Position numbers and translations under genes: made by a program. Positions 1 to 61,765 of a DNA stretch of 64,000 bases are shown piece after piece. Under the pieces are notes generated by a model that saw nothing but the letters and a program-made list of their open reading frames with translations, was not told the origin of the DNA and searched no databases. Position 1 is the first letter of the stretch. The number at the start of each line of letters is the position of its first letter. The stretch lies in assembly GCA_964188305.1 (NCBI GenBank), contig OZ076901.1; one strand, given 5' to 3'. The DNA is from Podarcis bocagei. Its lineage: Eukaryota.

Positions 1-438
1 GACAAGATCCAGGCCCCGGATTCCTTTAACGCAATATCCTTGGACATGGAGGGCCAGGCAATGGCCGACCTCCCCTCCCCCACACATCAATAAGCCAATG
101 CCTAACGGCCAAACCTTACAAGTTGTGATGATTGCTAAGAGGTAGGTGAAAACCAAGTGGCCAGTGCCAATCTGACAAATGGAAAAATTCCTACCTGTCC
201 CCTGTCCCAAGACAGACAACCAACCAAAGTCCAAAGCAAGACCAGAAGACATCTAAAATAAAAGGGTGGGTGGGCAGGTGTTTGACAGCGCAAAGCAGGT
301 GCACAGCACACGATGCACTGCCACTTATATACCCCCCCCCACGATCACCCCACTCAAAGTGATTGGCCAAAGAGGCATGGTGCCACCCCAGCATGGAAGG
401 ACTCACTCCACCCATGCAAGGGTGGGGTGAGCTGTGTT
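1..438 (-). mobile_element. ENE-bearing ~0.8 kb element, copy A (3' part runs off the window start)
   Basis: Shares GGATTCCTTTAACG and CCTTACAAGTTGTGA blocks and the U-loop motif with 45523-46336 and 58124-58917. TATATAAG on - at 324-331; 12-bp terminal hairpin CTCACTCCACCC/GGGTGGGGTGAG at ~402-431. Confidence 0.75.
141..195 (-). ncRNA. ENE-like RNA motif, copy A
   Basis: RNA: GGUAGG-AA-UUUUU-CCA...GUCAG(AUUGGCA)CUGGC...UGG-UUUU-CA-CCUACC. Confidence 0.6.
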
Positions 439-616
439 GAGGGCCTGCCCACAACCAGGACCATCTTTTAAGATGATCCAACATGTCCTGGAACTGGCCC
501 CGGAAACTACTTGGCAGCCAGTGCAGTTGCGCCAGGATTGGGGTTATATGTTCAAACTGTCTTGTTTTGCTGAGCAATCTGGCCACTGAATTTTGCACCA
601 GCAAAATTGAAGTTTC

Positions 617-935
617 CATACCCTCCAGCATTTCTACAATGAAAATAGTGACACCCTTTTTCATAATGACAATTTTACTATTAATACCCCATACATGTTA
701 CTGGGTTGCCCCAGCCACTCTGGGCAGCTCCCAACACATATAAAAGCATAATAAAACATTAAACATTGAGAAAACTTCCCTATAGAGGATTGTCTTCAGA
801 CGGCTCAGGGGTCGGATAACTCCATTCTCTCCAATGAAAACAGGGACATCCTAAGGAAAAGTGGGACTTTCTGGGACCAAATCAGAAACTCTAAATCCAG
901 GATGTCCCTGGAAAATAGGGACACTTGGAGGGTCT
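617..935 (-). mobile_element. Composite non-autonomous TIR element carrying an L2 3' tail
   Basis: TIR CATACCCTCC...GGAGGGTCTG. Internal L2 tail (CCCAGCCACTCTGGG..AACTTCCCTATA). Same internal junction at 8003-9262 and 17530-17820. Confidence 0.6.
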
Positions 936-8002: not shown

Positions 8003-9262
8003 CAGACCCTCCAAGTGTCCTATTTTCCAGGGACAGTTGTGGATTTACAGAAGGCATCCCAGTTTCTGATTTGGTCCTGGAATGTCCTACTTTTCCTTAG
8101 GACATCCCTATTTTCATCAGATAAATATTGGAGGATATCCCTATTTTCATTGGATAAATATGAGTATGGAGTTATCTGACCCTCGAGCCACCGGAAGGCA
8201 GCCCTGTATAGGGAAGTTTTAAAATGTTTAATGTTTAGATATGTTGGAATCTGCCCAGAGTGGCTGGGGCAATCCAGTCACATGGGCAGAGTACAAATAG
8301 TATCATCAACTGCCGCATTAAGCAGTTGGTCCCTTACCTTTCCCACCCTGATCTGGCCACAGTGATCCATGCGACGGTCACCTCCAGGCTTGACTACTGG
8401 AATTTGCTCCACGCAGGGCTGCCCTTGAAAATGTCCCAGAAACTCCAGCGGGTGCAGAATGCTGCAGCGAGGTTTTTGACGGGGTCCCTGCCATGGGAGC
8501 ATATTCACGCGGTGCTTTACCAGTTGCACTGGCTCCTGGTGGAATATCGGGTCAGGTTTAAGGTGCTGGTTTTGACCTTTAAAGCCCTTTGTGGCTTAGG
8601 GTCCTCGTATCTATGGGACCGCCTCTCCTGGTATGCCTCGCAGAGGACCTTAAGGTCCATGAATAATCATAGTTTAGAGGTCCCGGGCCCTAAGGAAGTT
8701 AGATTATCCTCCACCAGGGCCAGGGCCTTCTCAGTGGTGGCTCCGACCTGGTGGAATGCTCTGTCCCATGATACCAGGGCCCTGCAGGATTTAACTTCCT
8801 TCTGCAGGGCCTGTAAGACAGAGCTATTCCAACTGGCTTGAACTTAGCCTGATCTTTTATTCCCCTTCCTTCCCTCCCTCTCCCCTCTTTATGAAGATTA
8901 CCCACTCTGGGATCCCACAGCTAATTCTCCCCTGTTCTCCTCGCTGACCCAAATAGGACTAACTTAGCCAGCTAGCCCTGATGATCATCTAATGTTTATT
9001 GGATGGTTTCCCCCCCAAATTGATTTTTAATTCTGAATTTATTGTTATTCACATTTTATACTGTATTTTATGCTTTTTTTGCATCAATTAAGTGTTTAAA
9101 ATTTGTTCTTAGCCGCCCTGAGCCCGGTTTTCTGAACTGGGAAGTGAGGGGTATAAATAAAAATTTATTATTATTTATCATCATCACCACCACCATCATC
9201 ATCATCATCACAACAACAACAATAGGGTGTCTCTATTTTCATTGGATAAATGTTGGAGGGGA
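8003..9262 (+). mobile_element. Composite TIR element (family of 617-935) interrupted by an L2 insertion
   Basis: Starts CAGACCCTCCAAGTGTCC; internal GGAGTTATCTGACCC-L2 tail; resumes after 9222 with CTATTTTCATTGGATAAATGTTGGAGGG. Confidence 0.55.
8310..9222 (+). mobile_element. 5'-truncated L2 LINE (ORF2 C-terminus, 3'UTR, simple-repeat tail)
   Basis: ORF 8260-8841: VIHATVTSRLDYWN..LQRVQNAAARFLTG..HIHAVLYQLHWL..RFKVLVLTFKAL..RAFSVVAPTWWNAL; tail (ATT)/(CAT)/(CAA)n. Confidence 0.9.
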
Positions 9263-10494
9263 TACAATGGCAAGCCCAACCCATCTTTGCAGAACCTAAT
9301 TAGTTAAAGATTAATTGCTTACAAGCTGGAAACATTTCTTGCAACAAAATTAAATATACGGTAGATAATAAATGATTTAAATCTAATCCACACCTCTCTA
9401 CTTTAGCAATTTTACTGACAACTTGCACCCAGGAACAGTTTCACAATTCCTCTGCATATGGTTGAGATCAACATTGATGTGACTGTATATACTAATGTTT
9501 AAAAATTCTTTTTGTGCAGTATTTGATAGATCTGTGGAGGTTTTTCTGCTCGTTGATCAAATACTGCATTATTTTTAAAAAATCTTTTTAAAAGCTCATA
9601 TGTGCCATCACATAAAAATTGTCCCATTCTCCTCTCCCTGGTATTTTATCAATGACTACAGAAGCACGTGCTGGTCAATAAAACATCACACACACACACG
9701 TACACATACACAAATGTGATGTGATAGTAGGCATATTCAAATCAGGATTGTGGTTTTTGCAATGTTCTATCAATATGCATATGTGCTTAAGTAAACGTGA
9801 ATGAACTGAAATAACTGAACATTGTGGCAAACTGTGCATGAACAGTACTCTGCAAAATTTGAAACAACATCTGGCAATTTGAAACTTAAAAAACTAGAGA
9901 TAAAAGAAGGTGGGCCATTTTGGAAGCAAAGGTGGACCACAAATTGCTGCCTTGTTTTGCATGCTCTTTTGTCCCACATGAAACTAAGGAGTAAAAAATA
10001 AAATAAAGTGTGTGTGTGTGTTGCACTTACATTGTTAATATTATAGCAGTGTCACACATTCCTGTTGCTTCATTCATTTGCTTTAGTTGTTAGTTACGGC
10101 TCAGTGGTTGTTTTGGCTCATAGAAAGCAACCACTCTTAGGGGGGAGTATCTAAGTAGTTCCACTAGCACAGGGACTTTTAGCTCTGCAATGAAACTTCT
10201 TCACCCACCCCTGTCCCTGTGTGACCCCCACACAATCCCAAAATTTGTTCAGGGATTTCCTGCAGCCCTATCAAAGTCTGGGAGGGTTGCCATGGCAGTA
10301 GGACAAGGATCCATTCCTCATTTCAGCCAGCCTTTGCTGATGGGATAGCACTGCATCAGGGTTGGAAAATGCCCTCAAACTCCTCCTTGGGAGATGTCCA
10401 GCATTGAATCTAGTCATGGTGCAAGCAAAGCATCCAGGGTCTCACGGGGTGACCGGAGTGAGAGCTACCAGCCAGGCAGAGATATCAATCCTAG

Positions 10495-10690
10495 CAGGCA
10501 TGCCATCTATGGGGGGGGGGCTGAGCCCCCAATTTTCAATGAGGGGTCTGCCCCCTCAATATTCTGCAGCCAGGCGGGCTCCATCGGGCCCTCCCGTGGC
10601 TGTGACTAGACCACATTGGGCTGCTTTCCACCATGTGACATCACACACACACCTGGTCCCCCCAATGTTGGGCAGAACTGGCCATGCCTG
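10495..10690. mobile_element. hAT-type MITE inserted in copy B
   Basis: TIR CAGGCATG/CATGCCTG; imperfect 8-bp TSD AATCCTAG/AACCCTGG. Confidence 0.65.
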
Positions 10691-10808
10691 AACCCTGGCC
10701 CCTTATGGAGTCCCCCTTTAGCATGCGGTCCTGCCATATGCAATTTCCACTCAAAGTAAACAAAGTTGTACAAAATGCCTAATGTAAGTAAGCCTTACTT
10801 CACTGTGG

Positions 10809-10870
10809 GAAAGGCAAAAAACCAAAAACCAAGGTGTCAACTGAGATTGAAAGGGGAAAAAAACCCTTTC
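10809..10870 (-). ncRNA. ENE-like RNA motif, copy B
   Basis: RNA: GAAAGG-G-UUUUUUU-CC...GG-UUUUUU-G-CCUUUC. Confidence 0.5.
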
Positions 10871-12370
10871 TGGCCCTGTCAACCAGCAGCCCAAATAGCT
10901 CAGTGAGGCTCTAATCTGTAGGTGGGTGGAAAGTTCATGGGGGGAAATGGCCCGGATCCCTAATGGGCATGGCCCTTTACAGGGCTCAACTCATGCTCTC
11001 ACTTGTGAGATCTCTCAGGATGATCCCATTCTGCAAGGTTTTATGAGAGCCAACAGGGAGACATGATTCCCATCTCCCCACTGCTTTCTGGGCCAAGATC
11101 ACCAGACAAAGCTGCTCCACATGCAATCATGCCTGGAACAAGGCTAGTCTATACTGCTGACCCTGTGCCTCCTTAAAAAGTACTTCAGACACCTAGCCCT
11201 GCTTTTCTAGTAATAAAGTGGATTCTTCACTTCCCTCAGAGCAATCACACCTCATTCTTTTGAATCACTGAAGACTGATCTCACTTCTAATCCTCCATGG
11301 TTTTTATCATTCCCCCCACCCCCTCATGGTCATGCTCTTGTCTTCATTCCTCCTGAGCTTCTCTCTAGAACTTGATAGCTCTTAAACTACATTCCATTGG
11401 CAAAGGAGAGAAATGCCTAGTTCACAGTTTATCATTTTTGTTTTAAAAAAGAAGCTTCTCCATATTAGATTTATCTGCAGTATTAAATCTCTCTTTGTTT
11501 TAATTAGTTCTGCCAAGTGATTCATGACATTTCATGACAATAATAGCAGCTCTGGGTATCTTTTTTTCCTTATTTAATCATTCTTCAGAGAAGTTTGGTC
11601 TGCAATGCATGGCTTTTAAGAACTCTGTGCTGATGTAAAAATGTTAATTTGCAAAATGAAAGTCGCTCCACTTTATCCTTTGCCAGACAGGTCTCCCCCA
11701 TGGCAAATCTACAGCTGTTAGGTGTCCTCTGAGGGGAGATGGGCTTTTGGCAAATATTTAGATTTATGACAGTTCAAAAGACAATTTAAACCTGCATAAT
11801 TAATTTTCATTAGAATTGATATGATGGATTTCATTTGTTTGGTAAATCATGATAATATACTGTAACTGCTTCAGCTCGAAGACAGCAATCATATGTTAAG
11901 AGGATATAGTGGAACAACGTCATGTGGCTGGTTCATTACTAAGATTGTAATTCTGCAATTGACAGTTCATTTATATATTTATTCAGGTAACAATTTAAAC
12001 CACGCCCTTCACGTTTTTGGATGGCAGTATCAGAAGGATCATATATTCCCATATTCTTGCCTTGAGATCATTATCAAAGGCCCTTCTCTGTGTGCCCTTG
12101 TGCAACCTGGGACACAAATATCTGAGAGAATAGCTGATTACATGCAGACCTGCCCATTTCCTTCAAATCTGCAGTCAAGGCCCTTCTGGTGATGTTTGCA
12201 CAGACAAAAATATGTAGCTAGTGGGCTTGGGAAAGGGCCTTTTTGTGGTGGCTCCACATCAGACAGCTTGAAGGTTGGTCTCCCAGGGGAGGACATTCTC
12301 AATGGCAGCCTCTAAGTTGCAGAACCCTCTCCCCACAGAGGTGTGTCTGGTACCTTCATTATACAACTTT

Positions 12371-19639: not shown

Positions 19640-19815
19640 AATAGGAACACAGGAAGCTGCCATGTGCTTGGTATATCTAGCTCAGTATTGCCTACACTGG
19701 TTGACAGCATCTCTCCAGGGTTTCAGATGTTCCCAACCCTACCTGGAGGTGCTAGAGATTTAATCTGGGACCTTCTGCATGCAAAGCAAATGCTCTACCA
19801 CTGAACTACAGCCCT
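19640..19815 (-). mobile_element. tRNA-derived SINE (Squam2-like)
   Basis: GGGACCTTCTGCATGCAAAGCAAATGCTCTACCACTGAACTACAGCCC is the reverse complement of the tRNA head. Confidence 0.75.
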
Positions 19816-26129: not shown

Positions 26130-27975
26130 TTTATTATTTATACTGTGCCCGTCTGGCTGGGTTTCCTCAACCACTCTGGGTGGCTTACAACATACCTAAA
26201 AACATAATAAAACATCAATCCTTAAAAACTTCCCTAAACAGGGCTGCCTTCAGATGTCTTCTAAAAGTCAGATAATTGTTTGTTTTCTTGACATCTAAAG
26301 GGAGAGTGTTCCACAGCGATGGAGCCACTACCGAGAAGGCCCTTGAACTGGCTCCCTGTAACTTCACTTCTCAGAGTAAGGGAATCAGCCGAAAACCCTC
26401 AGAGGAGGACCTCAGTGTCCAGGCTGAGTGATGGAGGTGGAGACGCTCCTTCAGGTATAGTGGGCCAAGGCCATTTAGGGATTTAAAGGTCAGCACCAAC
26501 ACTTTGTATTGCACTGGGAGCCAGTGAAGATCCTTTAGGACTGGTGTTATATGGCCCCGGTGGCCACTCACAGTCACCAGTTTAGCTGCCGCATTCTGGA
26601 TTAGTTGTAGTTTCTGAGTCACCTTCAAAGGTAGCCCCACGTAGAGTTCATTACAGTAGTCCAAGCGGGAGATAACCAGGATATGCACCACTCTGGTGAG
26701 ACAGTCTGTGGGCAGGTAGGGTCTCAGCCTGCGTACCAGATGGAGCTGGTAAACAGCTGCCCTGGACACAGAATTGACCTGCACACTTCCATGGACAGCT
26801 GTGAATCCAAAATGACTCCCAGGCTGCACACCTGATCTTTCAGGAGCATGGTTACCCTGTTCAGGATCAGGAAGTCCCCCACCCCCACCCACCCCCTGTC
26901 CCCCCAAAACAGTACATCTGTCTTGTCAGGATTCAACCTCAATTTGTTAGCCACCATCCATCCACCAACTGTCTCCAGACACTCACACAGGACCTTCACT
27001 GCCTTCACTGGTTCTGATTTGAAGGAGAGGTAGAGCTGGGTATCATCTGCATACTGATGAACACCCAGCCTAACCATTCTGATGATCACTCCCAGGGGCT
27101 TCATGTAGATGTTAAAAAGTATGGGACATAACTCTGAGGCACTCCACAAGTTAGAGCCCAGGGGTCCAAACACTCACCTCCCAAACCACTTTCTGGACAT
27201 GGCCCAGGAGAAAGGAGCAGAACCAGTGCCTAACAGTGCCCCAGCTCCTCTAGATAATCCAGTAGGATGTCATGGTTGATGGTATCAAAGGCCATTGAGA
27301 GATCCAGCAGAACTAGGAAACAGCTTTCACCTTTGTCCCTACCGCGCCAGAGATCATCAACCAGCACGACCAAAGTTGTTTCAGTCCCACGATTGAGGCC
27401 TAAATCCTGATCCAAATGGTCCGCATTCTCCAGGCATCCCTGGAGTTGTTCCGCAACCACCCGCTCAATCATTTTGACCAACAATGGAAGATTTGAGACT
27501 GGGCAATAGTTAGCCATATTGACCCGGTCCAAAGATGGTTTTTTAAGAAGCGGTTTAATAACCACCTCTTTTAGTAGGTCTGGGAAGGCTCCCTCACAGA
27601 GGGAAGCATTCACCACCCTGCGGAGCCCATTGCCCAACCCTTCCCGGCTTACTTTTATAAGCCAGGATGAGCAAGGAGACAGGTGATCGGTTTCACTCGT
27701 CCAAGCAGCCTGTCCACATCTTCAGAGGTAACAGATTGGAATTGATCCCATGCAACATGACCAGACAGGACCCTTGCACTTTTCTGCCCTGGCCCTGTTC
27801 CCACAGTCTATCTCTTTCCAAACCTGAGTGACTTTATCTGCAAAGAATTTTGCAAAATCATTGCAGGAGATCTTGGGGTCCCTACCAGGCCCCTGTGACG
27901 AAGGTGACTCTGTTAGATTGTGAACCACTGAAAGAGTCTCCTGATGCTGTTCTCTGCAGATGCAATAGAAGTGAC
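26084..27975 (-). mobile_element. 5'-truncated L2 LINE (frameshifted RT, 3'UTR, (ATT)n tail)
   Basis: ORFs: KPLLKKPSLD..NY.PVSNLP, LVLLDLS.AFDTINH, HQYADDTQLY, LRLNPDKT, SRLDYCN, HITPVLKDLHWLPV. Confidence 0.93.
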
Positions 27976-29384
27976 GAAGGAAGTCCTCTTCCTCTACATC
28001 TACACTTGTACTCATAATCACTTTGTTTGCCAGGAGTAATAAACCATTCTATATTCTTTCAATCAACAACCTTATCAGACTATTTATTTCTTCCCTAAGC
28101 TGCAATATATACACCAAACCAATATAAGGCAGCCTCCTACATTCCTAGTTCATACTCCTGAGATAACCTCTGAATTTTGATTGCATAAGAAAGTGTTTGG
28201 CTGAAATGTTCCTTCGAGGTTTAACAGGGCTTATTTCCAAATAAATGTGTTTAGGCTAGTGGGGCAGGGCCCCTCTCAGCTGACTTTCCTGATTGACTGA
28301 ATTTCAGTGCAAGAAGAGAAGTTAGTGTCGGAATATTGTATAGAATTAAATAAAACATTTGTAAAGCTCAAACTGGGATTTTAAAACCATGGATTTACAA
28401 AGCCTTCCGGGATACAGCCATCCGTACAGTTAAGCCTCACAATTTATTTAGGCCTTTCTTGTGGGCCCAAGTGAGTTTTTAAACATTATCTGATCAACAT
28501 AAGAGCATTAACCTCTTTTTCATTACCCATAAAATATGAATGAAAAGATTAAGCTGGTGCCATCCAGGGTTCCTTCAAAGGAATCAATAACCGTAGTCTT
28601 AGTAAACTTGTCTGGTTATTTTTTGTTTTTTGTTTTAAAGATGGAGCTTTCGTTAAAAAGGAGGGAGGGAGAACAGTTAACTGCTTGCAGAGAAATGGAC
28701 ACTCTTCCTTCAGTCTGCAGAACTTCAGGAAAGGCTACTCACAGTGGTCTGAGAATCTGAAGGACCTTCTGCCTGTGTGTGAAGAACTTCAACCAAATCT
28801 CTGCTCAGGTTTACCCCACTTCCTGAGGTACTAGGGTTGAATCCAAGATCCTCTACCAAATCAGCCTGATTTGGGGTGATCTGCGATTCAACCAGGATAG
28901 GTTGTTGCAGCCCTGGATCACCTCAGGTAAGATCGGGTCCAGAGCTATAAAGAGGGCAGTTGAGTGATGAGAAGAGGGACAGAGAAGGAGATGCACATAG
29001 TTTTATTCTGGGCTTTCTTTTATGATTCTGTCTTAAATGAGGTAGCCTTTTCTGAATTGCTACCTGTTCCAAATGCAGGGCTGGCTAGACAGGCACAGCA
29101 GTGTGGACTCAGTGCATAATTGATTTGGTAGTGCTGGAAGGAGATGTTTGGTTTGGCAGTCACTAGGACATGTTTTGGGATAACTTGTATACAGGGGAAA
29201 GGCTCCACTTGAACTTGGATGGAACCAGATAAAAGGTGAGGCGTGCTCAGGTATTAAAAATCATCCTCTAGGGATGAAGGGGAATTTTTAAATTATCATT
29301 TAAATGTCTGGAGGGGTGAGTTTGGTGGTGGTAGGAACCTGGGCAGGCTGTGGAAGGTTGTAGGGAGCACAGAATTCTGGCATA

Positions 29385-29560
29385 AGGAATCTTATACTGA
29401 TACATACAATTGGTCAGCCTAGCTCAGTATGCTCTGCACTGACTGGCAGCAACTGTCAGTGGTTTCAGAAAGGGGTCTCTGCCAGCCCTACCTGTTGATG
29501 CCACAGAGTGAACCTGGGGCCTTCTGCATGCAGAACAGATGCTCTACCATTGAGTTGCAA
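29385..29560 (-). mobile_element. tRNA-derived SINE (Squam2-like)
   Basis: GAACCTGGGGCCTTCTGCATGCAGAACAGATGCTCTACCATTGAG; CTAGCTCAGTAT body. Confidence 0.7.
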
Positions 29561-44587: not shown

Positions 44588-44916
44588 CATTAGGTCCAGT
44601 CGTGACTGACTCTGGGGTTACGGCACTCATCTTGCTTTATTGGCCGAGGGAGCCAGCGTAGAGCTTCCGGATCATGTGACCAGCATGACTTAGCAGCTTC
44701 TGGCAAACCAGAGCAGTGCACGGAAACGCCGTTTACCTTCCCGCCAGAGCGGTACCTATTTATCTACTTGCACTGTGTGCTTTTGAACTGCTAGGTTGGC
44801 AGGAGCTGGGACCGAGCAACAGGAGCTCACCCCGTTGTGGGGATTTGAATCTCTGACCTTCTGATCGGCAAGCCCAAGAGGCTCAGTGGTTTAGACCACA
44901 GCGCCACCCGCGTCCC
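44588..44916 (-). mobile_element. Sauria SINE (Squam1)
   Basis: GGCCGAGGGAGCC..TTTACCTTCCCGCC..GGTACCTATTTATCTACTTGCAC..TTAGACCACAGCGCCACCCGCGTCCC. Confidence 0.9.
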
Positions 44917-44934
44917 TTATTTTCCCATTAAGTA

Positions 44935-45370
44935 ATTATTATTATTATCTATTAGATTTATATACCGCCCTTCATCATGCCCTTCATCATGATATCTCAG
45001 GGCAGTTCACAAGAAAAATCACAACTAAATAAATAAATAAATAAAACAAGGCAACAAACCAATAGCCGCCGTCCTCCCACAAGCACATTTCAAAGGCTGT
45101 ATAATATTAATCAGCCCAAGGCCTGATCGAAAAGGAACAAGTTTGCTTGCCACCTAAAGATATACAATGAATGCACCAGGCAAACCTCGCTGAGGAGAGT
45201 GTTCCAGATACAGGGAGCCCACTGCATCAAAGGCCCGTTCTCGTGTTGCCACCCTCCGGACCTCACGTGGAGGAAGCACACGAAGAAGGGCCTCAGATGA
45301 TGAACGCAGAATCTGGGTCGGTTTATATGGGGAGAGGTAATCCTTGAGGGATTGCAGTCCTGAGCCATAA
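44935..45370 (-). mobile_element. L2 3' fragment
   Basis: ORF LKDYLSPYKPTQILRSSSEALLRV..RERAF; L2 tail ATTTATATACCGCCC. Confidence 0.8.
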
Positions 45371-45522
45371 TGGAGATTGGTTGAAAAAAATGCAAGAAAA
45401 ATGTTCAGCACAACACTTTCACATAGGGCTGAACAAACAGACTTGTACCATACAACAAAAAGAATGCATTTGGAAACAGGCCAGGTAACATAAAACCTCT
45501 AATGCAGTTAAAATTCCCATTT

Positions 45523-46336
45523 GCATGTCGAGGTCCCCAATCCACCCCCAAAATAACTCACAACGGACACGTAATTTTTGTTTAAGATTTTTGGCATGAT
45601 TTTGGCCACAACTTTATTCAAATACAAACCGTGAGTGGTTGTTTAGGCATTGGTTAAGACTATCTGTCCCCCCCCCCCCCACCTGGGGACAGAACTGACT
45701 TCCGGGCACCACCGAAAGACAGTGCGGGGGAAAGCAAGTCGGGGAGAAATGGAGCTGAGTCACAGGCCCTCAATTCTCATCCGCATGCTCCCCGAAGGCT
45801 TGCCGGCCCTAGTCCCATTCCAGGGATTGGACGAAAAGATGGCAAGCCCCAGGATTCCTTTAACGGAATTCCCTTTCCACAGCAACCTTGGAGGGGCAGG
45901 CCCAGCCTATCCTAACCCCTCCTCCACCAATTTATAACCAATGCCTAACCGCAACCTTACAAGTTGTGACGATTTGCTACGCAGTAGGCAAAAACCACCC
46001 AGCCGGCCAGTTTGCCAGGTGGAAAAATTCCTACCAGGCCCCTGCTCAAAGGCAGACGACACCATGACAGGCATAGCAAGGTCAACGCAATAACCCCTTA
46101 CTCTAGGGCGGGTGGGCGGGTGATCCGTTGCACGCAGCAAAAGAGAAAGTACAAGGCTGCGTGCAGAGTATTTAAACCTTTTACCCCTCCCACCAAAATT
46201 GCAACATAACTTTTGCCCCAGCAACTCAGCAATCCAATCACTGCCCCCTGGCCATCTTGGAGAACTTACCCAGCAACAAAGGGGGTGGCTCAGTAGACCC
46301 CACCGCAACACGTGCTCTCCCTGAAGGAGAACACGC
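45523..46336 (-). mobile_element. ENE-bearing element, best full copy C (814 bp)
   Basis: Flanked by TTT/TTT; ends GCATGT...ACACGC; terminal hairpin GTGCTCTCC/GGAGAACAC. On -: AAGATGGC, ATTGG, TTTAAATA (46169-46176), U-loop motif, AATAAA (45613-45618). Confidence 0.8.
45983..46035 (-). ncRNA. ENE-like RNA motif, copy C
   Basis: RNA: GGUAGG-AA-UUUUU-CCACCUGGC-AAACUGGCCG-GCUGGGUGG-UUUUU-G-CCUACU (6-bp lower stem, U5/U5 loop, 9-bp upper stem). Confidence 0.65.
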
Positions 46337-49300
46337 TTTACTGATCCTCAGTCCTGATTTTCCTGTTTTGTGTTAATATTGGTTTCTGTGGGACAAGGTC
46401 TGCATGCACTGGGACAAAGGACAGTAGGGAAATTTGATCCAGTTCTCATTTATAAGTGGCTCACCCTAAATCACTGCAAAACAGCCACCCTTCAAAATCT
46501 GAACTTTTCTGAATTCCGTAATGCAGTTTTCCAACCAAGCAGTGTGAACAAAAATACATATCAATCATATGCTAGGGTAAAGGGTGCATAAGAATGTAGG
46601 TAGTAGTGAAAATACCATACAAAAATGCATTGCATGAAGGGAAATTGACTGATTCACCCATAAAAAAGGCTCTAGGCCTGAAAGGACCCTTGGTTGTTTC
46701 TTTATTGAGTTAACTTTGTTTCTTTTAAGGAAGTGGACAAAATCCAATTCAGAACAGCTGCAATAAACCAGCATTGTCACCTTGGGCTGGCAATAAGTTC
46801 TTTCAGTATACTTCATACACTGTGGCAACGGAGACCAACCACAGTTTCATATAAGACAGCCAATCTCTTCTCGTTTCTTGCATGGGGGTGAATGCCCCCC
46901 GCATTATGAAGAGTAGAGTAAAATTGCAAGGTATAAGGAATTCTTTATGAAAACAACTAGAAGCAGGGGAAAAAGGAAGAAATAAAGTGTATGTCTTTGT
47001 GGGGGGGGGTCATATTTGTGTTGTTGATCCTCGTTTCAATGAAGGTTTAAAATGTAAATGACAAGTGAAAGAATAGGAATGAAGTATCTTTAAAGTTGCA
47101 ACAAATCATTTTATATTGATAGAATCCTGGGCTTCGATCCAAACACAGCTCTTGCCTTAATGCAAGCTGATTTCAGGCGACTTCAAAATAGCCCAGATAC
47201 TTTGGTGATTGGCAGGTGCTATAGAGGCAGCTGCCAAAATCAAATTGATTTTCCCCACCCCAACTTCTTCTTTTGAAGGACTTGATCTTTTTATATGAAG
47301 CTAAAAATGAAAGCACGTACATATGATTTCTGGGCTGGTTTTAAATTTTTTGATGGGAGCTAAGTACAGCAAAGGATGGCCAATGATTTAAAAAATGGAA
47401 AGAAAGTGGGGTGTTTGTGTACGTTTCAAGAGATGTAAGGAAATTGTCTCAGGTGGGGGAATAAATGTGTCCCTGTTTTCTTTTAAAGCCAAATCTAGCC
47501 CAATTTACACTATCTGAAACAATATGTGAAATGAAGAGTAGTCATCATCCAAAAATGTTTTTGAAAAATTTTCTCTGTGTGTGTTGTTTTCTCTAATATA
47601 TATAATTCACACTTTCCTGAATTTTGCAATGCAGCTTGCCAGCCAAATAATGTTTACAAATAATGCATATCGTAGGGTAAGACGCGCATAATAATGTATA
47701 TGCCAGGGAAAACAACATACAAAATTCTTTATATTGGGGGAAATTACTTTGCTACAATGTTTATATTAGGCACAATTATATAGAAATTTGTGTCTTTTAA
47801 AAAAAAATCCAACTGATGTAGAAATGTGTAGAACTGAATTTAAGACTTGAACCTGGGAGAAACCATAATTGACAGATTTGCCTATGCCTAGATGTTCTTT
47901 ACAAATTACTGCAGTGCGGGGGGGGGGGGGACGGGGACACAGCACTGCATGCCTGTGCTTGGTTTCATGATTAAGCATTTTGAGCTCACCACAATTGTTC
48001 TAAGAAGGATGAACTTTAGTCTTCTCCAAATGGTGGCTTCTACAGCTATGTTCCATTAACAGATGGAACTAGCTCAAGAATTCACTAGGCAGAAAACTCA
48101 ATTGCACTTGAGAGCATGGCAGTTAGAGATCACATAATCAACTCCTTTGGATACAACAGGTTGGAAGTGGGATTCACTACTGGGGGGTCCAGCAAAGGAA
48201 CATAAGTTCAAAAATGGTGCAAAGATGAGGATCCACTCAATGTTCATTGTTCAATAAAAAAAAAAGTCCAATGTGTTGGGGGAGGGGGCGGAGATGAGCA
48301 GAAAACAGAAAGAGGAGGAACTTGAAAAAGCCTCTTCTAATCCACTGAGAGCTCTTTGCTTGCTAGCACATTTCACACATCTGTTGTGGGCTCAAGAGAT
48401 ATGGATTCCAACAGCAATATAAATGAATTCAAACACACATTACAGGTCTGATTAATTTTCTGCTGGGGACATTTTTAAAATACTTGTCAAGTAATCTTTG
48501 TGTCGTGCGGCATATGATACGACTCCCAAGTACTTGTTTCTTCCATATGGGGAAGGCTTGCCAATATTAGCAGCACTGAAGTCTTGGAGTGCTGCTGACT
48601 GCTAATATTCTGGAAGACTGGTGTTATTATTGGCAGGGTTTCTCCTGATGTTTCAGAAAGAATAACAGGTGGCAACAGAAGGATTTGTTCATATTGAAAC
48701 ATTTATAATTTCTTGTAGCTTTGAGATTTCCCCCCGGGCGTTGAAGGGAGTCTGAAGTAACCTTTGTGTCTATGCAATGCATGAAAAATGCTTTGCCCAA
48801 ATTTCTCCACAGATTTAGGAATTCCAAATTACCTTGCTCCTTTATGGAGAGTTTATATCCAATTATGGATCATGGACTGCTCATCACAACATTGCATAGC
48901 CAGTCAGATTCAGTTAGGCGTTTACCTTGTTGATGGCAAACCAGGATTATTTAAAAAGAGAGCAGAGGTTTTGTGGGCTATTAACATTCAAGTAATCTCA
49001 GTAATCAGAAAGATAAAGAGAAACAAAGCACATTTTTTGCAGTCCCTGACTCTGACCATTTCCCTTACTTTGCAGCAGGAATCCTTGAAAAATCGCTGAA
49101 AATGATTTGTATTTAAAAAACAAATTTTAATCAACTCTGAATGCAAAATGGTTCCTGCAGTGCTTCTATTCATTTAATATTGGAATCGATTTAACAGTGT
49201 TAAAATACACTGCGCATATTGAATTATTATTATTATTAAAACACATGCCCCCCTTTTCTCTCTAAAACAAACTCAAAAGTGCTTCAAAAATAGTCCACTG

Positions 49301-50164
49301 AACACACACACACACACACACACACAGGGAAAAACCAATTCAAATTATTCATATCAGTTTCATATAAAAAAACCCGAGAGCAAGCTCCCCCCCCCCCGAA
49401 CTTTTTCACATTGGGTGTGGAGCTCATCTCTTCCACCTGCACACACTACTCAAAAATAGCATCACTGCAATTATAAGTGCAAAGGCTTTACTTTTTGTGC
49501 AGTTTCTTTTGAAAAATGCATGCTTGTGAATCAGTAAATGTTGGGAGCAGGGTAAGAGGTACAAAAGCATTAACGGGATGAAAAACTCCAGCAAACTGTA
49601 CATGTCCAATTCCATATTTAATTTTAGAAATTATCTCACAGTGCAAAAGTGCAACTGTATTCAGTTGAGGCTTACTCCCAGGTAAGTCCTTATAGGATTT
49701 TGGCCTTAGGTAAACTGGAATTAAGGAAATGTGAAATAAAGGGCAAAATAAGCCAGTACAGTATGAACTCATTGTTAAGGATCAAGAAGAGTTTGTTTGT
49801 TTTTTCCAGTTCAATTTTAATGCAAATCTACTAAACCAAAACACAGCTATCCTTCATAATATGCAGTTCTCTGTACACAACCAAAACACACATACATTCA
49901 AAATATACATATTGGGGGGATCAGCATGCAAAAGTTGTGTATGTTAGTGGTAATAAGATGGAAACAAATGCACTGTATTAAGGGAAATTGCTTGCAAAAT
50001 TGTGTATATTAGGGAAAATGTGTATATTAGGAGCGTGAAAAAGTGTGAAAAACGCTACCATTATTTTCTGTGCTAGGGAAGGGAATGAGAATACAAATGC
50101 AGAAATTGGGTGAACCGAACTGAGGATTTGAAAAATAAGAAACTTTGAGAAACTTTTGGTCTAT

Positions 50165-50310
50165 GAAGCTCAGTATTGCTCACACTTTGGGCTTGCAGCT
50201 CTCCAGGGTTTCTGAGAAGCGTCTCTGCTAGCCCAACCTAGAGATGCTATGGCTGGAAACTTTGACCTTCTGCATGCAAAACTGATACTGTACCAAGAGC
50301 TATGACCCAG
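50165..50310 (-). mobile_element. Degraded Squam2-like SINE
   Basis: AGCTCAGTATTG..CTCTCCAGGGTTTC..GACCTTCTGCATGCAAA..GAGCTATGACCC. Confidence 0.6.
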
Positions 50311-53785: not shown

Positions 53786-54743
53786 TGAGGATGAGCTCGA
53801 ATATGTGAAAAAAGGCAAAAACAGGACAGGGGACACTTTTCTCCCAAAAAAGGACGATCATATTTTTTAAGGGACAGGTGGCATTGCAACTTGCTGGGTA
53901 TGACCTCAGACCTAGGGGGCTAATACACCTATCTCTGGCCCATAGACAGGGCCAGCCCAAGAATTTTTGGCACCTGAAGTGACAAAATGATGCTACCTCC
54001 CCCAGGGAAGAAGGGGTGAGAGATGTTCTATATCAGGAACGTGAGGGAAATCTAGTGGGATTCAAAGGCTGTTGTGTGTGTGTGTTGGGAAAGGGCTTGC
54101 TCTGAATCTGGGCAGGCGCAGAGCCCAGGAGACTGCAGAGGGCAGCCCCCCTCCATTTCCTCCCTGAGGGTGGAAGGAGATGAGCAGCATCTCCTATTCA
54201 CTGAGAAGCCATTGTGGAGGCAGCATTGCACAGTGGTTTCTTGGCGAATAGGAGGCACTGCTGATGGCCTCTCTCTGACCCTAGGGAGGAAATGGAGGCA
54301 GCTGCTGAGTGGGCAGCAGATCCGTCCTCCAAGAAGCATGTCATAGCCATTGCTCCCACTGTGGCTGCAGCACCAACAGTGGGCAGTGGATTCCTTAGAG
54401 GCCAGATCTGCTGTCCCTGTGGATCCTGCCACCTGAGGTGGCTGCCTCTCCTTCTCTCATGGATTGGGTGGTCCAGTTCTGCTCCTGGGATTCTACTTAT
54501 TTCAAGGCTGCCTTCATCACCCTGCTGTACCCCATCCTGGGCCACATTCACACCATATATTTAAAGCACTGTGATGCCACTTAAAAAAATTATGGCTTCC
54601 CTCAAAGAATTCTGGAAGCTGTAGTATGTTAAGAGGCCTGATAGTGTTTAGGAGACCTCTTTTCCTCTCAGAGAGCTACAATTCCCAGAGTGGTTTAACA
54701 GTTCATCGCTCTTCACTGGGACCTCTAGTTCTGTGAGGGCAAT

Positions 54744-55603
54744 GACTGCTCACCGCATTAACTGGGGGGCGGCTTTTGCATGGTTGTGCGCAGGCCCCCC
54801 TGGAGACTACGAGACCCCCGGCAAGGTAGCTGGCTTCACCGCCCCCCTGAGCCAGATACCTGGAGCTTCCCACTTAACCTCAGCAATCAAACAGTCCTGA
54901 CTGGGAGGGGGGGCGTTGCCATGGGAGTTGGCCAGGTAGAGTTAGGACCGCCAACACTCACAATTGAGGATGCAACTTACCTGTTGGTCCTCAGTCAGCT
55001 CCTGAACTTCCCCCACCCTGCCCTCCCTTAGTTTATGCCTTCTTTCACGGTTTAACCTTCTTCTTTACAGCTATGCAGGCACTGCTGCAGTCCTAGATGG
55101 TTGCTGTTGAGGGACCGGGAAGGAATTTCCCTGCATTGGCAGGTTTCGCCTTCCCCGTAGCAAAATGTCACAACTTTGGCGGTTTGTAGGCCTTGGGTGG
55201 AATACTTTAGTCTATCTTCCCTCAATGGGGGGGGGGGCATGAAGCGGTGACCCACGCCCCCCCCCCCCGTGGCAGCGATCACAGGGTTCCCCTTTAAAAG
55301 GGTTATTTTGAGGGGAGGCACTGGCCATACGCCAATGGGTTGTCAGTGCTCTACGATGCGGCAAAGTGGGAGGGCAGACATTCTCCAGAGGCAGTCCAAT
55401 CCCCACACATTCTGGATAACCCTGATGTTCCCCAGATCCCTGGCTGGGGACTGGCAGGGATAAACACCCAATGCCTAAGCCAAGGTCTTCCTACATCTGA
55501 GAATTTAATAAAGTTGTGGCCAATTTTAATCCCATAACACGTCCAGTGTCATTATTCCTCCCGGGGGTTGCCTGGGGCCTAGGGGGTCTCCACCTCTCCG
55601 TGC
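54744..55603 (+). mobile_element. ENE-bearing element, divergent full copy D (860 bp)
   Basis: Flanked by (GC)AAT on both sides inside the host MITE; U-loop motif; GTAGCAAAATGTCACAACTT; AATAAAGTTGTGGCCAA at 55507-55523 identical to copy C. Confidence 0.75.
55117..55155 (+). ncRNA. Minimal ENE-like RNA motif, copy D
   Basis: RNA: GGGAAGG-AA-UUU-C-CCUGC(AUUG)GCAGG-UUU-CG-CCUUCCC. Confidence 0.55.
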
Positions 55604-55716
55604 AATAAGGGTCTCCTAACAGCTCTCATGAACCTCCCTTTACAAAGTTATAGCTCTCATAATGATTTGAGGGAAGCCCATATGATTTAAAGTGGTATCG
55701 TAGTCCTTTAAATATA

Positions 55717-55860
55717 CAGTGGTACCTCGGCTTACATATGCATCAGGTTATGCATCAGCAGCAGGAGGCCCCATTAGCTAAAGTGGTTCAGGTTAAGAAC
55801 AGTTTCAGGTTAAGAACAGACCTCTGGAATGAATTAAGTTCTTAACCTGAGGTACCACTG
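55717..55860. mobile_element. Tc1/mariner MITE (deletion derivative)
   Basis: CAGTGGTACCTC/GAGGTACCACTG; TA TSD. Confidence 0.88.
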
Positions 55861-56834: not shown

Positions 56835-58123
56835 TATAGAATATCTGTTCTTTATTAGGTGACCACTGAATTAAATTGCATCTCCCTTTCGCCAGGTATA
56901 GCCTGCAACATGGGGTCGGAATAACAGATAAGGCCTCTTTTAAATCCTTCATTGCAACTTAAAGAGAATATTGATTATATTATTTTAGTGTGTAAAGTAA
57001 AAGACTGTTTCTGGCCTTTATTTTAATGACCCTTTTCAGCATTGGCATCGACAAAAAAAGATGCTAGGAGGATTATAATTTTCCTCTACTGAGCTCTTAG
57101 AGACATACTTAGCCATTGTGGCAAACTTAGCCTGACATAATGATAATTTTAGGATGTTTTGTTCATCCTCTGATATTTATATTCATTCTTATACTTAGCA
57201 GAGCCTGCTTGACCTTTCCCTGTATGGCACAGAGGCCTACCACATTAATATAGAGTCTAATGCTATTTAAATGGATTCTAGCGTTCTTTAAGCATTAACA
57301 GAAAGAGCCCAATTCTCTCTCTAAATCACATGCACCTGTGTCCAAAGCTAGCTGTGTGACAAAGGGAAAAAAGCTACACTGTTGGCTTAGAATCAGAGTG
57401 AGCCACAATCTAAATGGAGCCCTGAAGTGGCTCAGTCGTAATGTTTTGGGGAAAAGTGGGGGGGGGACGTTCTGACTGACCCATTTCTTTACGCCAGGGA
57501 TGAATAACCAGTAGCCCCCCACCATGTTGCTGGATTCCACCTCCCATCATCCCCAGTCAGCGCATGGGAGTTGCACATGTGCTTCTTGTGCATTAATAAC
57601 AGCATTAATGACAGACACAGAAAACAGAACACAACAGTAAATAGAATGCAAAGTTAACCTAAATATAACTAAGGAAGGAAACTAAGGTAAGCAAAGGGAC
57701 ACTTCCTAAGTGACTATGACTAAGACAGACAACAAACATTTTCTTTGGGGTGGAGCATATAAGGATGGGACTGGGCTTAATCGGAAAAGGATTAGAAACA
57801 CACAGGTATATGGCCAGGTAAGGTACTCTGAAAGAAACAAGACACAAACTGAACAAATCCCACCAAGCTCCACCAAACTTTTTTTAAGAGACAGAACTTA
57901 CTGTACAAAGGAGTAAAAGCAACGTGAACTTTGCAAAGCGGGAAGGCATTTTAAAATTTCACCACCATAATGATGATGATTGATTGATTTTTTCCTAAAG
58001 GAACTCAAGGCAGCTTACAAATAAAAGCAAGAACCGCTAAAAACATCAAAAAAGCAATCATTAAAAAAACCACCAATTAAACACTGATGGAATTAAATAT
58101 ATATACAAACATAAAATCTGTTT

Positions 58124-58917
58124 GCGTGTTCAGACTCAGAGACCTCCCCCCTAAATAAACACACAATTGACTAAAATTTTAGTTTTGGGTTTTGGCAGAA
58201 TTTAGGCCACAACTTTGTTGATTACAGAAGGGGAGTGGTTGCATAGGCTCTGGTTCGACTAGCTCCCTGCACCCTTGCAGGCAGCACTGACCCAGGGCAC
58301 CAGTATAGGTCAGCCTAGGGTGAACACCTGAGGAAGGCGGAAAACCCGGGAACAGACTCTGTTCACTCCCCAGAAGCTTCCCTGGACTCAGGCATGGGCA
58401 CAAGCCCCTCTCGGGGGTTGACTAAACCAAGTTGAGTCCCTGGATTCCTTTAACGGAATGCCCTTCACATAGGGATGGTGAGACCGTTCTCCCATCCCTA
58501 TCACCTGAACCAGAGCCTATCCGCAACCTTACAAGTTGTGACGATTTGCTACATGGCAGGCTAAACCCAAAGGGCAACAGTCCATCAGCCAACTGGGGAA
58601 AATTCCTGCCTTGTCCCTGTCCCAACGACAGACGACACACAACGGCATAGCAAGGTCAATTGCAAAATACCCTAAATATAGGGAGAGGTGGGCGAGTGTT
58701 CTGAATGCACGAGCCAAAAGAGGAAGCCCTGGGTCACGTGCATAGGCATATATAGATCCCTCGATCTGTTTAGACTGCACCCCATTGGCCAGATTGCACC
58801 CTGCAGTGAGGGACCTACCAATCGGGTGTTGTGGCTGTCCAATATACCCACTCATAACACAGGAGTTCAGTCTCCAGGTCTCACCACAACAAGTGCCCTC
58901 TTTGAGGGAAGACATGC
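58124..58917 (-). mobile_element. ENE-bearing element, full copy E (794 bp)
   Basis: Flanked by TTT/TTT; ends GCGTGT...ACATGC; terminal hairpin CCCTC/GAGGG; TATATAT at 58748-58754; poly(A) signal reads AACAAA (58214-58219). Confidence 0.8.
58555..58610 (-). ncRNA. ENE-like RNA motif, copy E
   Basis: RNA: GGCAGG-AA-UUUU-CCC...GUUGGCU...GGG-UUU-AG-CCUGCC. Confidence 0.55.
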
Positions 58918-61039
58918 TTTAAAACATACCAATAATTATAATAAAAAGAGCACAGCACCAGCCCTTTAATTAAAAGCAGTCATGTTCCCCTGCTGGCAGA
59001 AGGACAACAAGGAGGGTGCCAGTCTAGGTTCTCCAGGGAGAGGGCTCCAAAGTCTGGGAGCGGCCACTGAGAAGGGTCTCTCCCAAGCCCCCACCAAGCA
59101 TGCCAGGACTAAGAGAAGGGTCTCCTGCAAAGGAGGCTTGTATGAAGGAATGCCATCTTTCAGATAGCTTGGACCAAAGTTGTGTAGGTCATAACTAGGA
59201 CTTTAAACTGTGCCCAGAAACAGACCGGTAACCAAGGAAGCTATTCTAACAAGGGAGTATAATGCTCTCTATAACACCCCCCCCCCAGCACTGTTAATGG
59301 AGAGTGTTGAGTGTGATTCTAGCCTCCAATGTACTTCTGTGGAGAGTGAGTTCCACAGCTTAAGGGCCATCACAGCGGTCAGTGTCCCTTCCCAGCTTAG
59401 GTTCTGATGCTGGAGAAAATACTAAGAGGGCCTCTTTGCTGATCTTATCACCTGAGATGGTTTACAGAGAAGGAAGCAGTCTTTCAGATATTTGGTCTGA
59501 ACTATTATCATGCCATCTGCAATGTTCTTCCTGAAGGTGGAAAGTCAAAATTATGTGAGAGCGGTATCTAGGAACCAGGAAATGACAGTATTCAATAGGG
59601 TTATATTCATTTAATATTGACATGGGATTCTAAGAAATTAGCTGGAAAACTGCACCATGATGGTGATGGCGATGCTGTGAACATGTATGAGGCTTTACAG
59701 AGCAAGAAAAAGACAGATTCACTACCCAACAGAGCTTGCGATCCAACGTTGGCAGGCAAAAGGAGGGGATGGAGTCAAAGATACCTAGAGGAAAAATGTT
59801 TATATGCTCCATTTCAGTAGAGAATGAGGGCTAAAGGATAAAAAATTACACTGGCCTTTCTCATCAAGCTGATATTTTATGGTCTGTAACCAAATGCTGT
59901 TAAATGATTGCATCTTGCTAAAGTGTGTAAATCAATAAAGTAAAATAATAATAGTACAGCACATATTTCACTATTATCAGTCTCTTCAGTTAAGAAGTGC
60001 TGTCCTGCTAAAGAAAGAAAACTGCACAGATGCAGCAAATTTGTAAAGCATCTGTTGTGTCTCTGCGTGATTAGGCTACCTAAAAGGAACCAGCATATAG
60101 GCATATGATGAGACAGTCAGTTAATGGTGCAGCTAACCCCTTTGTGCTGTGGAAGAAAGCTTTTGTTTCTACACTTTGATTTGCACTATTGCAGGCCTGT
60201 AAACCCTTTTATTGCTTCGTAGTAAAGCTGGGGGAAGGGCTAATCTTTTCACCAGTCTTCTGCAATGGTTTCTGATGTTTATCTTAGCTCCTCCCTTACA
60301 AATATTGTTGTTGTTGTTGTTTAAAAAACATTTTAGAAGGTTAAGACTCCACTGCTATGAAAGATATATCCTCTCTCCCCCCCCCCCCCGCAAAAGTTTG
60401 GGAATAAACAATCTCATTAGCATTTGTTTTTCTAAGGGACACTTCTTTGATAATTTCATTTTACAGCAGGATGGGCTTACCATTTGCATTTAAATGAAGG
60501 CTGCTGAAGGAAGATGCAGAATTCAATTTTATCTAGCTGATAAGATCCTGGCAATGAAGATTACAGCTCATGGTTTGAAACAAACCAGAGCTCACTAATC
60601 ACTTCACCCTTACAAGTTGCTTGGATCTTGAAAATGATCAAATGAAATATGGTGTCTTTAGTAGCATGTACAGAAACTCCAAAAAAGCAAAGAAAACACA
60701 GTTCATGATTACACTACAATGTCATAACATCAATTGATCAGGACTGGCAAGTTCAGACAAACATGGATGGATATTGTGATTGACCACCATTGAAATCCTG
60801 AAAACAGAGGGTTTGATTGATTGTTTTGGCAATGATGAAAATGAATTCAAATATGCATTAGCACTTTCAGCTGTCCTCTATTCCAGGTTTCGTTTGACTT
60901 TACACAAGCCACATCTGCTTTGATCTATCACATAGGCCTCATGTAGAACACAGTTAAATAACATTGTATTGTGCAGAATGTGCCTCTGAGAAAGATCAAG
61001 TTAGAATGTTGAAGTCATAATGCAGCACACATTGCCCTG

Positions 61040-61765
61040 GCTGGTGTGACCCATGAACGCAGCAAAAGAACAAGAATATACAATGGTGACGGGATAAAAT
61101 CGGGCCAAATGTTAATGATAGCAGCAAGCAGCATGATGGTTGGCATGGGTCCCAGGATCAGTTCACCATTCCGCAAGCCTCATGTTGATAGAATGGATCC
61201 GCCAGGTTTGGGCCACCCCAAACCTGTTCCATGGGAGTTGGCCAATGTTGAACCTTGCCATGGTAGAAGCCAAGCAAGCAAGGTCTCACTGGGCAACCAG
61301 GGTGCAGATTCCTATCAGGCAGATACCTCAAACTTGGGGTGCTGTGGTCAATCTTCCCCTTATGGGCCCCCCCTATACTATGTTGATCCTGCCCAGTGCC
61401 ATTTCCACCCTCATACAAACAACGTTCTTCACCTAACAAGGAAAGGCCATAATTTCACAGAGGGAAAGGTGAAAAAACCCAAACAAGTGCCAAACAGGTT
61501 GAGAGAGAAAAATTCCTTTCCAGCCCTGTCAGCCCACAACCCAAAATTGCTCAGTGAAGGCTCTAACCCGAGGGTGCGTGGGTGGGAAGCTCACAAAACA
61601 AAATGTCCCTGAACTCCAGGGAAAGCAGCCTTATATAGGCATTTACCTCCCCATGCAAGGGCTCATGGGGCAGGTTTTTCCCTTGAGCCTATCACACAGA
61701 GAGGATTTTGCTGCCATCTGTGGGCACAGCGCTGCCAGGCAAAGGTGTCCCGTGCTTATTGGGCA
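61040..61765 (-). mobile_element. ENE-bearing element, copy F (older subfamily); boundaries approximate
   Basis: TATATAAG on - at 61630-61637, CCCACCCA.GCACCC block, U-loop motif; colinear with copy B. Confidence 0.6.
61463..61521 (-). ncRNA. ENE-like RNA motif, copy F
   Basis: RNA: GGAAAGG-AA-UUUUU-CUC...UUUGGCA...GGG-UUUUUU-CA-CCUUUCC. Confidence 0.55.

Follow-up and report, generated by a model that had tools for sequence, protein, structure and literature searches.

The locus analyzed here lies in a 64,000-nt stretch of the Podarcis bocagei genome (assembly GCA_964188305.1, contig OZ076901.1), referred to hereafter as the window, and consists of a unit read on the minus strand, copy C, which is one of six related copies (A to F) in that stretch. 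No homologue of the copy C flanks was found elsewhere within the 64,000-nt window, and the copies did not share flanking sequences among themselves. Along copy C, a CCAAT/TATA promoter within the first ~190 nt is followed, ~140 nt further on, by an ENE-like hairpin and, towards the 3' end, by an AATAAA signal with a GU-rich tail. The individual elements and their positions are compiled in Table 1.

Table 1. Elements of copy C, listed from the whole unit and its borders to the 3' tail (positions refer to the window; letters A, D, E and F denote other copies of the family).
Feature	Position	Strand	Description
Whole unit, copy C	45523-46336	-	814 bases; probable solo terminal-repeat unit with LTR-like U3-R-U5 logic; the copy E alignment starts and stops exactly here
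5' flanking trinucleotide AAA	46337-46339	-	Equivalent AAA of copy E at 58918-58920
3' flanking trinucleotide AAA	45520-45522	-	Equivalent AAA of copy E at 58121-58123
5' terminal hexamer GCGTGT	46331-46336	-	Inverted repeat of the 3' end; read from the sequence
3' terminal hexamer ACATGC	45523-45528	-	Read from the sequence
Terminal hairpin	46311-46335	-	Arms 46335-46326 and 46320-46311, loop 46325-46321; 10-bp stem (one G-T pair), 5-nt loop
YY1-like word AAGATGGC	46258-46251	-	Read from the sequence
CCAAT box (ATTGG orientation)	46234-46238	-	CCAAT boxes upstream of TATA also in E, A and F
TATA box TTTAAATA	46169-46176	-	Aligned position reads TATATAT in E and TATATAAG in A
Predicted transcription start zone	46140-46152	-	Initiator-like TA+1CTTT; placed by the 25-30 nt spacing after the TATA box
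Pyrimidine tract	~46150-46135	-	Begins ~25-30 nt past the TATA box, at the predicted start zone
ENE-like hairpin	45984-46035	-	6-bp lower stem, UUUUU/UUUUU internal loop, 9-bp upper stem; from covariation and folds
GUCACAACUU	45961-45970	-	5' arm of a possible long-range helix; within the best-conserved block of the family
AAGUUGUGGC	45605-45614	-	Putative 3' partner of GUCACAACUU in a long-range helix; overlaps the last bases of AATAAA
Poly(A) signal AATAAA	45613-45618	-	Retained in D; AACAAA in E
Predicted cleavage zone with CA dinucleotides	45585-45600	-	13-28 nt past AATAAA; predicted from the sequence, no read support
GU-rich downstream element	45542-45570	-	U5-like tail; alignable in C, E and D

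Direct reading of the sequence placed every motif that an earlier note had listed for copy C at the minus-strand position given there, the pyrimidine tract ~25-30 nt past the TATA box included. The YY1-like word AAGATGGC was likewise found where it had been reported, but it has no counterpart in copies E, A or D and is probably a chance occurrence. An exact reverse complement of this word, GCCATCTT, lies ~410 nt downstream in the same copy, at 45836-45843 on the minus strand; the match is not conserved and is probably also due to chance. Over the predicted start block, copies C and E were identical at 21 of 30 positions.

The six copies claimed for the window all exist. Four of them were recovered as homologous sequences by nhmmer, namely C, E (58124-58917, minus), D (~54776-55591, plus) and A (position 1 to ~473, minus), the last of which is partial and cut by the window start. 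The BLAST-alignable portions of these four copies were only ~73-75% alike. A covariance model of the hairpin additionally picked up copies F (61459-61527) and B (10804-10877; 28 bits, E ~4e-6), and a placement of copy B at ~18084 was rejected on the basis of this model. Copies B (10384-10929, minus) and F (61228-61581, minus), which are ~71% alike over ~350 nt, constitute a second, distant subfamily that has little in common with copies C, E, D and A beyond the hairpin block, and in which the U tracts of the ENE-like hairpin are longer (in B, UUUUUUU/UUUUUU). No AATAAA was seen downstream of the hairpin in either B or F. With regard to the surroundings of the copies, copy A is apparently inserted into a decayed LINE fragment, and copy D apparently lies between inverted-repeat arms at 54560-54740 and 55640-55720 (tttaaagcactgtgatgccac... 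/ ...gtggtatcgtagtcctttaaa), which may represent an insertion into a palindromic element.

TATA-like words and AATAAA each occurred about once per kb per strand in the window, and both were present in comparable places in ~0.6% of random 814-nt segments. Single motifs alone are not significant; what carries weight is their recurrence at aligned positions in diverged copies. TATA boxes were confirmed in copies A (331-324), E (58754-58748) and F (61637-61630), the box being kept in varied spellings at the aligned position of C, E and A (Table 1), while copy F harbors TATATAAG at a similar distance from its own hairpin. Both the sequence and the alignment bore out that copy D, which has lost the box, is without TATA, and the poly(A) hexamer of copy E reads AACAAA (58219-58214), as had been reported. 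In the alignment of C, E, D and A, the promoter region upstream of TATA showed 30-45% identity. Conservation peaked over the 3' half of the hairpin and the following GTAGCAAATCGTCACAACTTGTAAGGTT (80-95%), over the CCAAT-like, AATAAA and GTTGTGGCC block (~75%), and over a CCGTTAAAGGAATCC block at 45852-45866 (minus), ~120 nt past the hairpin, which copies C, E and A have retained and copy D has retained in part. Since promoter, ENE-like hairpin and AATAAA recur at matching positions in copies that are ~73% alike, the layout is real rather than the product of chance, and selection has preserved the order of promoter, ENE and poly(A) signal in copies that have diverged.

The hairpin of copy C comprises a lower stem GGUAGG/CCUACU, an internal loop AAUUUUU/UUUUUG and a 9-bp upper stem formed by CCACCUGGC and GCUGGGUGG. 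A U-rich internal loop between the lower and upper stems, as is characteristic of an ENE, was thus present in C, and similar loops were observed in A, F and B. Copies E and D carry just 3-4 U on each side of the internal loop, and their hairpins may have decayed. In a covariation test that comprised only five sequences, with upper stems that were not alignable, every one of the 30 lower-stem cells in the five aligned copies was paired, and two of the six pairs changed on both sides (U-A, C-G and A-U at one position; G-C and A-U at another). This lower-stem score was matched by 4 of 500 shuffles, and slid controls were 37-67% paired. When the hairpin was folded alone, the ENE shape was the minimum-energy structure in E, A, D and F, and an alternative fold that zips the U tracts together was preferred for copy C. 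Taken together, shape and covariation support the presence of an ENE-like element, which may stabilise the RNA by joining the poly(A) tail in a U-A-U triple helix.

Apart from a tRNA at 19744-19815 and noise, searches with Rfam 15 gave no family over the whole window at gathering score, nor any within 45300-46600 at E <=10; a single-domain ENE model may not be among the Rfam families. The tRNA match, on the minus strand (RF00005, 42.8 bits), could be either a tRNA gene or the head of a SINE, and the sequence from around 19668 to 19804 is repetitive, with further copies at 29419-29553 and 50156-50295.

At the 3' end of copy C, AATAAA is followed 13-28 nt on by CA dinucleotides and then by the GU-rich stretch from 45570 to 45542, which is how poly(A) sites of vertebrates are normally arranged. 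The hairpin and the poly(A) signal are ~370-420 nt apart. The 10-nt sequence GUCACAACUU is located 13 nt past the hairpin, and its complement, AAGUUGUGGC, is found ~350 nt downstream at the poly(A) signal; both arms are identical in C, E and D. The resulting long-range helix was present in the minimum-energy fold of the predicted 559-nt RNA, but it stood only marginally above shuffled sequences, 1-6% of which do as well, and its arms are invariant and offer no covariation support. A helix that bridges hairpin and poly(A) signal is therefore treated here as a possible lead.

The same conservation data bear on whether the unit could be a non-autonomous DNA transposon, for example a Helentron-like element read on the plus strand, in which the promoter- and poly(A)-like words would be incidental. 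Such an element would account for the 6-bp terminal inverted repeats, for the identical TTT flanks on the plus strand and for a hairpin that lies 1 nt from the plus-strand 3' end in C. However, this end hairpin, partly retained in copy E, is missing in A and D, and the covarying ENE-like stem together with the position-conserved TATA and AATAAA are all found on one strand. Moreover, the termini of the unit are conserved less than its interior, i.e., the hairpin, the core and the poly(A) block, which is the pattern of selection on an RNA and not on transposase binding sites. We regard a DNA transposon as extremely improbable.

The borders of the unit were compared between copies. Copy C ends in GCGTGT..ACATGC and copy E in GCATGT..ACACGC, i.e., GCRTGT..ACAYGC. 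An identical AAA trinucleotide was found on both sides of C and of E, two clean cases that amount to a weak test, and copy D is flanked by TTT and AAT instead of AAA/AAA. Neither TG..CA ends nor a 4-6 bp duplication common to C and E was found when all boundaries within +/-14 nt were scanned. In copy E, a 7-bp direct repeat, TATGTTT (58922-58928 and 58107-58113), lies a few bases outside the AAA; it is absent in C, and may reflect either chance in AT-rich DNA or an alternative target duplication. When the ends of C and E are joined head to tail, the junction reads ACAYGC-AAA-GCRTGT, in which a 3-nt core separates two inverted half-sites; targets of site-specific recombinases have this form.

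Published DIRS-like elements begin and end with NTT on their sense strand, and the AAA that flanks our unit on the sense strand is unlike it. Retrotransposons with a tyrosine recombinase carry an identical trinucleotide at both ends, one stemming from the circle junction and the other from the target (PMC7192593; PMC3266345), and in a Xenopus tyrosine-recombinase retrotransposon this trinucleotide is TTT (PMC9210276). Hundreds of DIRS-like copies are present in Anolis (PMC3266345). Furthermore, solo AB repeats are on record for Ngaro elements; they have been called 'reminiscent of solo LTRs', and their origin is attributed to recombination of the 5' repeat with the 3' repeat (PMC8547959). The Ngaro solo repeats of Cafeteria burkhardae resemble copy C in being isolated terminal-repeat units devoid of a coding region (PMC8547959), and likewise in having one and the same short sequence at either flank, which is what insertion by a recombinase should produce. 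Copy C differs from them in its lizard host, its ENE-like hairpin and its sense-strand AAA, and it is known here from the terminal unit alone. Overall, termini and flanks fit tyrosine-recombinase elements of the DIRS/Ngaro type better than integrase-type LTRs.

A solo LTR of an integrase-type LTR retrotransposon or ERV would have to be divided into ~190 nt of U3, ~555 nt of R, which is unusually long and would contain the ENE, and ~70 nt of U5. As in copy C, promoter and poly(A) signal are contained in such LTRs within a unit of several hundred bases that exists in many solo copies; the order of CCAAT/TATA, poly(A) signal and GU-rich tail is U3-R-U5-like, and ENEs within both the 5' and the 3' LTR have been reported for plant and fungal elements (PMC13541005). 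This origin is nevertheless unlikely, given that the ends read GCRTGT..ACAYGC rather than TG..CA, that C and E have only AAA/AAA in place of a common target duplication of 4-6 bp, and that, with an R of 555 nt, the 5' LTR would contain a functional poly(A) signal. The sole group of LTR retrotransposons with 3-bp duplications, Troyka, has CGCCA..TGGCG ends and is restricted to aquatic animals, being absent from land animals (PMC12440569); it was rejected on account of its termini, which differ from the ends of C and E, and of a host range that excludes reptiles. A Penelope-like terminal repeat was also rejected, since no hammerhead ribozyme match was obtained in 45300-46600 even at E <=10.

We searched for coding remnants of a parent element in the surroundings of the copies. 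Among the 84 stop-free frames of at least 90 aa in the window, neither a reverse transcriptase nor a tyrosine recombinase remnant adjoined any copy, and the only pieces of this kind were LINE-type reverse transcriptase fragments unrelated to the copies. These decayed LINE reverse transcriptase and 3' ORF fragments are located at 26374-28048 (minus), 8239-8838 (plus) and 194-697 (minus). No B1-like repeat was found upstream of any copy within the window. A stop-free frame that runs across copy C (45910-46347, minus) gave no matches in a protein search of public assemblies, and it is broken by indels between the copies, so that it is not coding. Exact-pattern scans for the conserved core in metagenome and viral contigs yielded 0 matches.

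In the light of its defined termini, its identical AAA flanks and the existence of multiple diverged subfamilies, copy C is better understood as the end-piece of a mobile element than as a self-contained gene. We consider it probable that an old retrotransposon family gave rise to copy C as a solo terminal-repeat unit, which is most likely the LTR-like end-piece of a tyrosine-recombinase (DIRS-order, Ngaro-like) element, a parentage suggested by the sequence of its ends and flanks.

The opposite reading, put forward in the earlier note, was that a solo copy forms a self-contained intronless Pol II gene, from which a ~550-nt capped, polyadenylated and ENE-protected RNA would be made as a functional product, either PAN-like or a piRNA precursor. 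The region 44800-47100 was therefore compared, at 90% likeness, with the raw reads of three RNA runs of unspecified tissue, two of them bulk RNA-seq and one single-cell (2026), of which ~12%, ~12% and ~6%, respectively, were read. None of the indexed runs recorded as RNA contains the stretch. Inside copy C, read depth in the three runs ranged from 0 to 14, with patchy coverage in both orientations. Reads followed the conserved blocks 45570-45723, 45801-46108 and 46263-46339, in the second of which coverage was highest over the hairpin and core; the predicted start region, 46109-46262, was almost empty. At nearly every listed position all reads differed from the window sequence, which indicates that they originate from paralogues. 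The unique flank at 46340-47100 had essentially no coverage, with a few reads in one bin (46494-46570), and close relatives of copy C accounted for tens of reads among ~12 million. No pile-ups of read starts or ends were detected across copy C in any of the three runs. Small runs of guessed type (X1-X14) were not counted as RNA evidence; one of them, X2, yielded only short paralogue contigs.

By far the most covered part of 44800-47100 was a tRNA-derived SINE at 44800-44953 (loose ends GGGGATTCGAACCGCCGACC...), whose depth reached several hundred-fold in each of the three RNA runs; its word depth in the small run X2 was very high.

Copy C is thus not visibly transcribed as a discrete RNA in the sampled runs. 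No discrete transcript with the ends that had been predicted, i.e., a start near 46145 and a poly(A) site ~15-30 nt past 45613, was present in the three runs, and the few tens of partial paralogue reads on conserved blocks lend no support to the proposal that the family is an abundant source of stable nuclear RNA or piRNA precursors. From the description of a solo copy as a mini-gene, the order of promoter, ENE and poly(A) signal stands, and a ~555-nt RNA could be made from it in principle; the self-contained gene is very unlikely in view of the missing discrete transcript and of termini that are those of a mobile element.

That promoter, hairpin and poly(A) module are contained within a single 814-nt unit and were kept across diverged copies would agree with a Pol II gene. 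It may also be reasoned that, should full elements have a second copy of the promoter-bearing repeat at their 3' end, each of them would contain a nested short transcription unit, and this is the single way in which the mini-gene idea might yet prove right. On the other hand, neither a discrete transcript nor any pile-up of starts or ends was seen in the two bulk and one single-cell runs, in which the reads were few, bidirectional and paralogous; defined termini with identical flanks are the mark of a mobile element; and every one of the features would be equally needed by a full-length retrotransposon RNA. We hold a functional solo gene to be very unlikely. Still a little less probable is a broader version, in which every unit, whether it stands alone or terminates a full element at the 3' end, is actively transcribed as a short unit, and the resulting ~550-nt ENE-protected RNA accumulates in the germline or embryo with a role of its own. 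If this were true, the RNA could serve, for example, as a decoy for deadenylases or silencing factors, or as a piRNA precursor, and it would represent a vertebrate genomic counterpart of the viral PAN RNA.

In the retrotransposon end-piece that we favour, the gene-like elements of copy C would be the promoter and 3'-end module of the parent element itself. The CCAAT/TATA Pol II promoter in the first ~190 nt would drive the parent element, and its 3'-end module would consist of the ENE-like U-rich hairpin, AATAAA, the cleavage zone and the GU-rich tail, both the transcription start and the cleavage site being predicted from sequence. The conserved 10 nt past the hairpin may pair with the poly(A)-signal sequence ~350 nt downstream and thus bring the poly(A) tail next to the hairpin. 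In the full element, the module could then hold the poly(A) tail in place as part of a U-A-U triple helix, and the genomic RNA would be deadenylated more slowly. Recombination between the repeats of the parent element would have left the solo unit behind, and this unit, having retained the parental signals, would come to resemble a 550-nt gene.

ENE-type poly(A) clamps are known from herpesvirus PAN RNA, from some insect and giant viruses, from the 3' ends of MALAT1 and NEAT1, and from plant and fungal transposons. In KSHV PAN RNA the ENE clamps the poly(A) tail, an element reportedly described by Conrad and Steitz in 2005 and by Mitton-Fry in 2010. As with the RNA predicted for our unit, PAN is an intronless Pol II transcript with a U-rich internal-loop hairpin. 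It is, however, an abundant viral RNA whose ENE lies ~120 nt from the 3' end, while copy C is a member of a repeat family for which no discrete RNA was detected in three runs.

The ENEs of plant and fungal transposable elements are said to have been the subject of a study by Tycowski, Shu and Steitz in 2016. In these elements, as in copy C, a hairpin with a U-rich internal loop precedes the poly(A) site towards the 3' end of the retrotransposon RNA, and some of the hairpins are embedded in LTRs (PMC13541005). In the Arabidopsis element Evade/Copia93, the ENE blocks deadenylation of the RNA and raises mobility (PMC12501189). The hairpin of copy C, known from sequence alone, differs from the plant and fungal examples in that it is single-domain, resides in a vertebrate host, and is separated from the poly(A) signal by ~370-420 nt that a helix may bridge. 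In the ENE literature covered here, transposon cases are mostly plant and fungal, and a case in a vertebrate transposon is not described.

There is nothing unusual about a solo repeat that contains both a promoter and a poly(A) signal, and ENEs in the RNAs of plant and fungal transposons are already known. Three points would be new, namely the vertebrate host, the occurrence in what is probably a tyrosine-recombinase element, and a helix that may bridge ~350 nt. The gene-like look of copy C is what the solo end-piece of a retrotransposon should show, and in genome annotation such units should be masked as repeats and not be recorded as lncRNA genes. If the hairpin works as proposed, lizard retrotransposons would use an anti-deadenylation device like that of Arabidopsis Evade, to which a long-range helix would have been added that brings a distant poly(A) site to the clamp.
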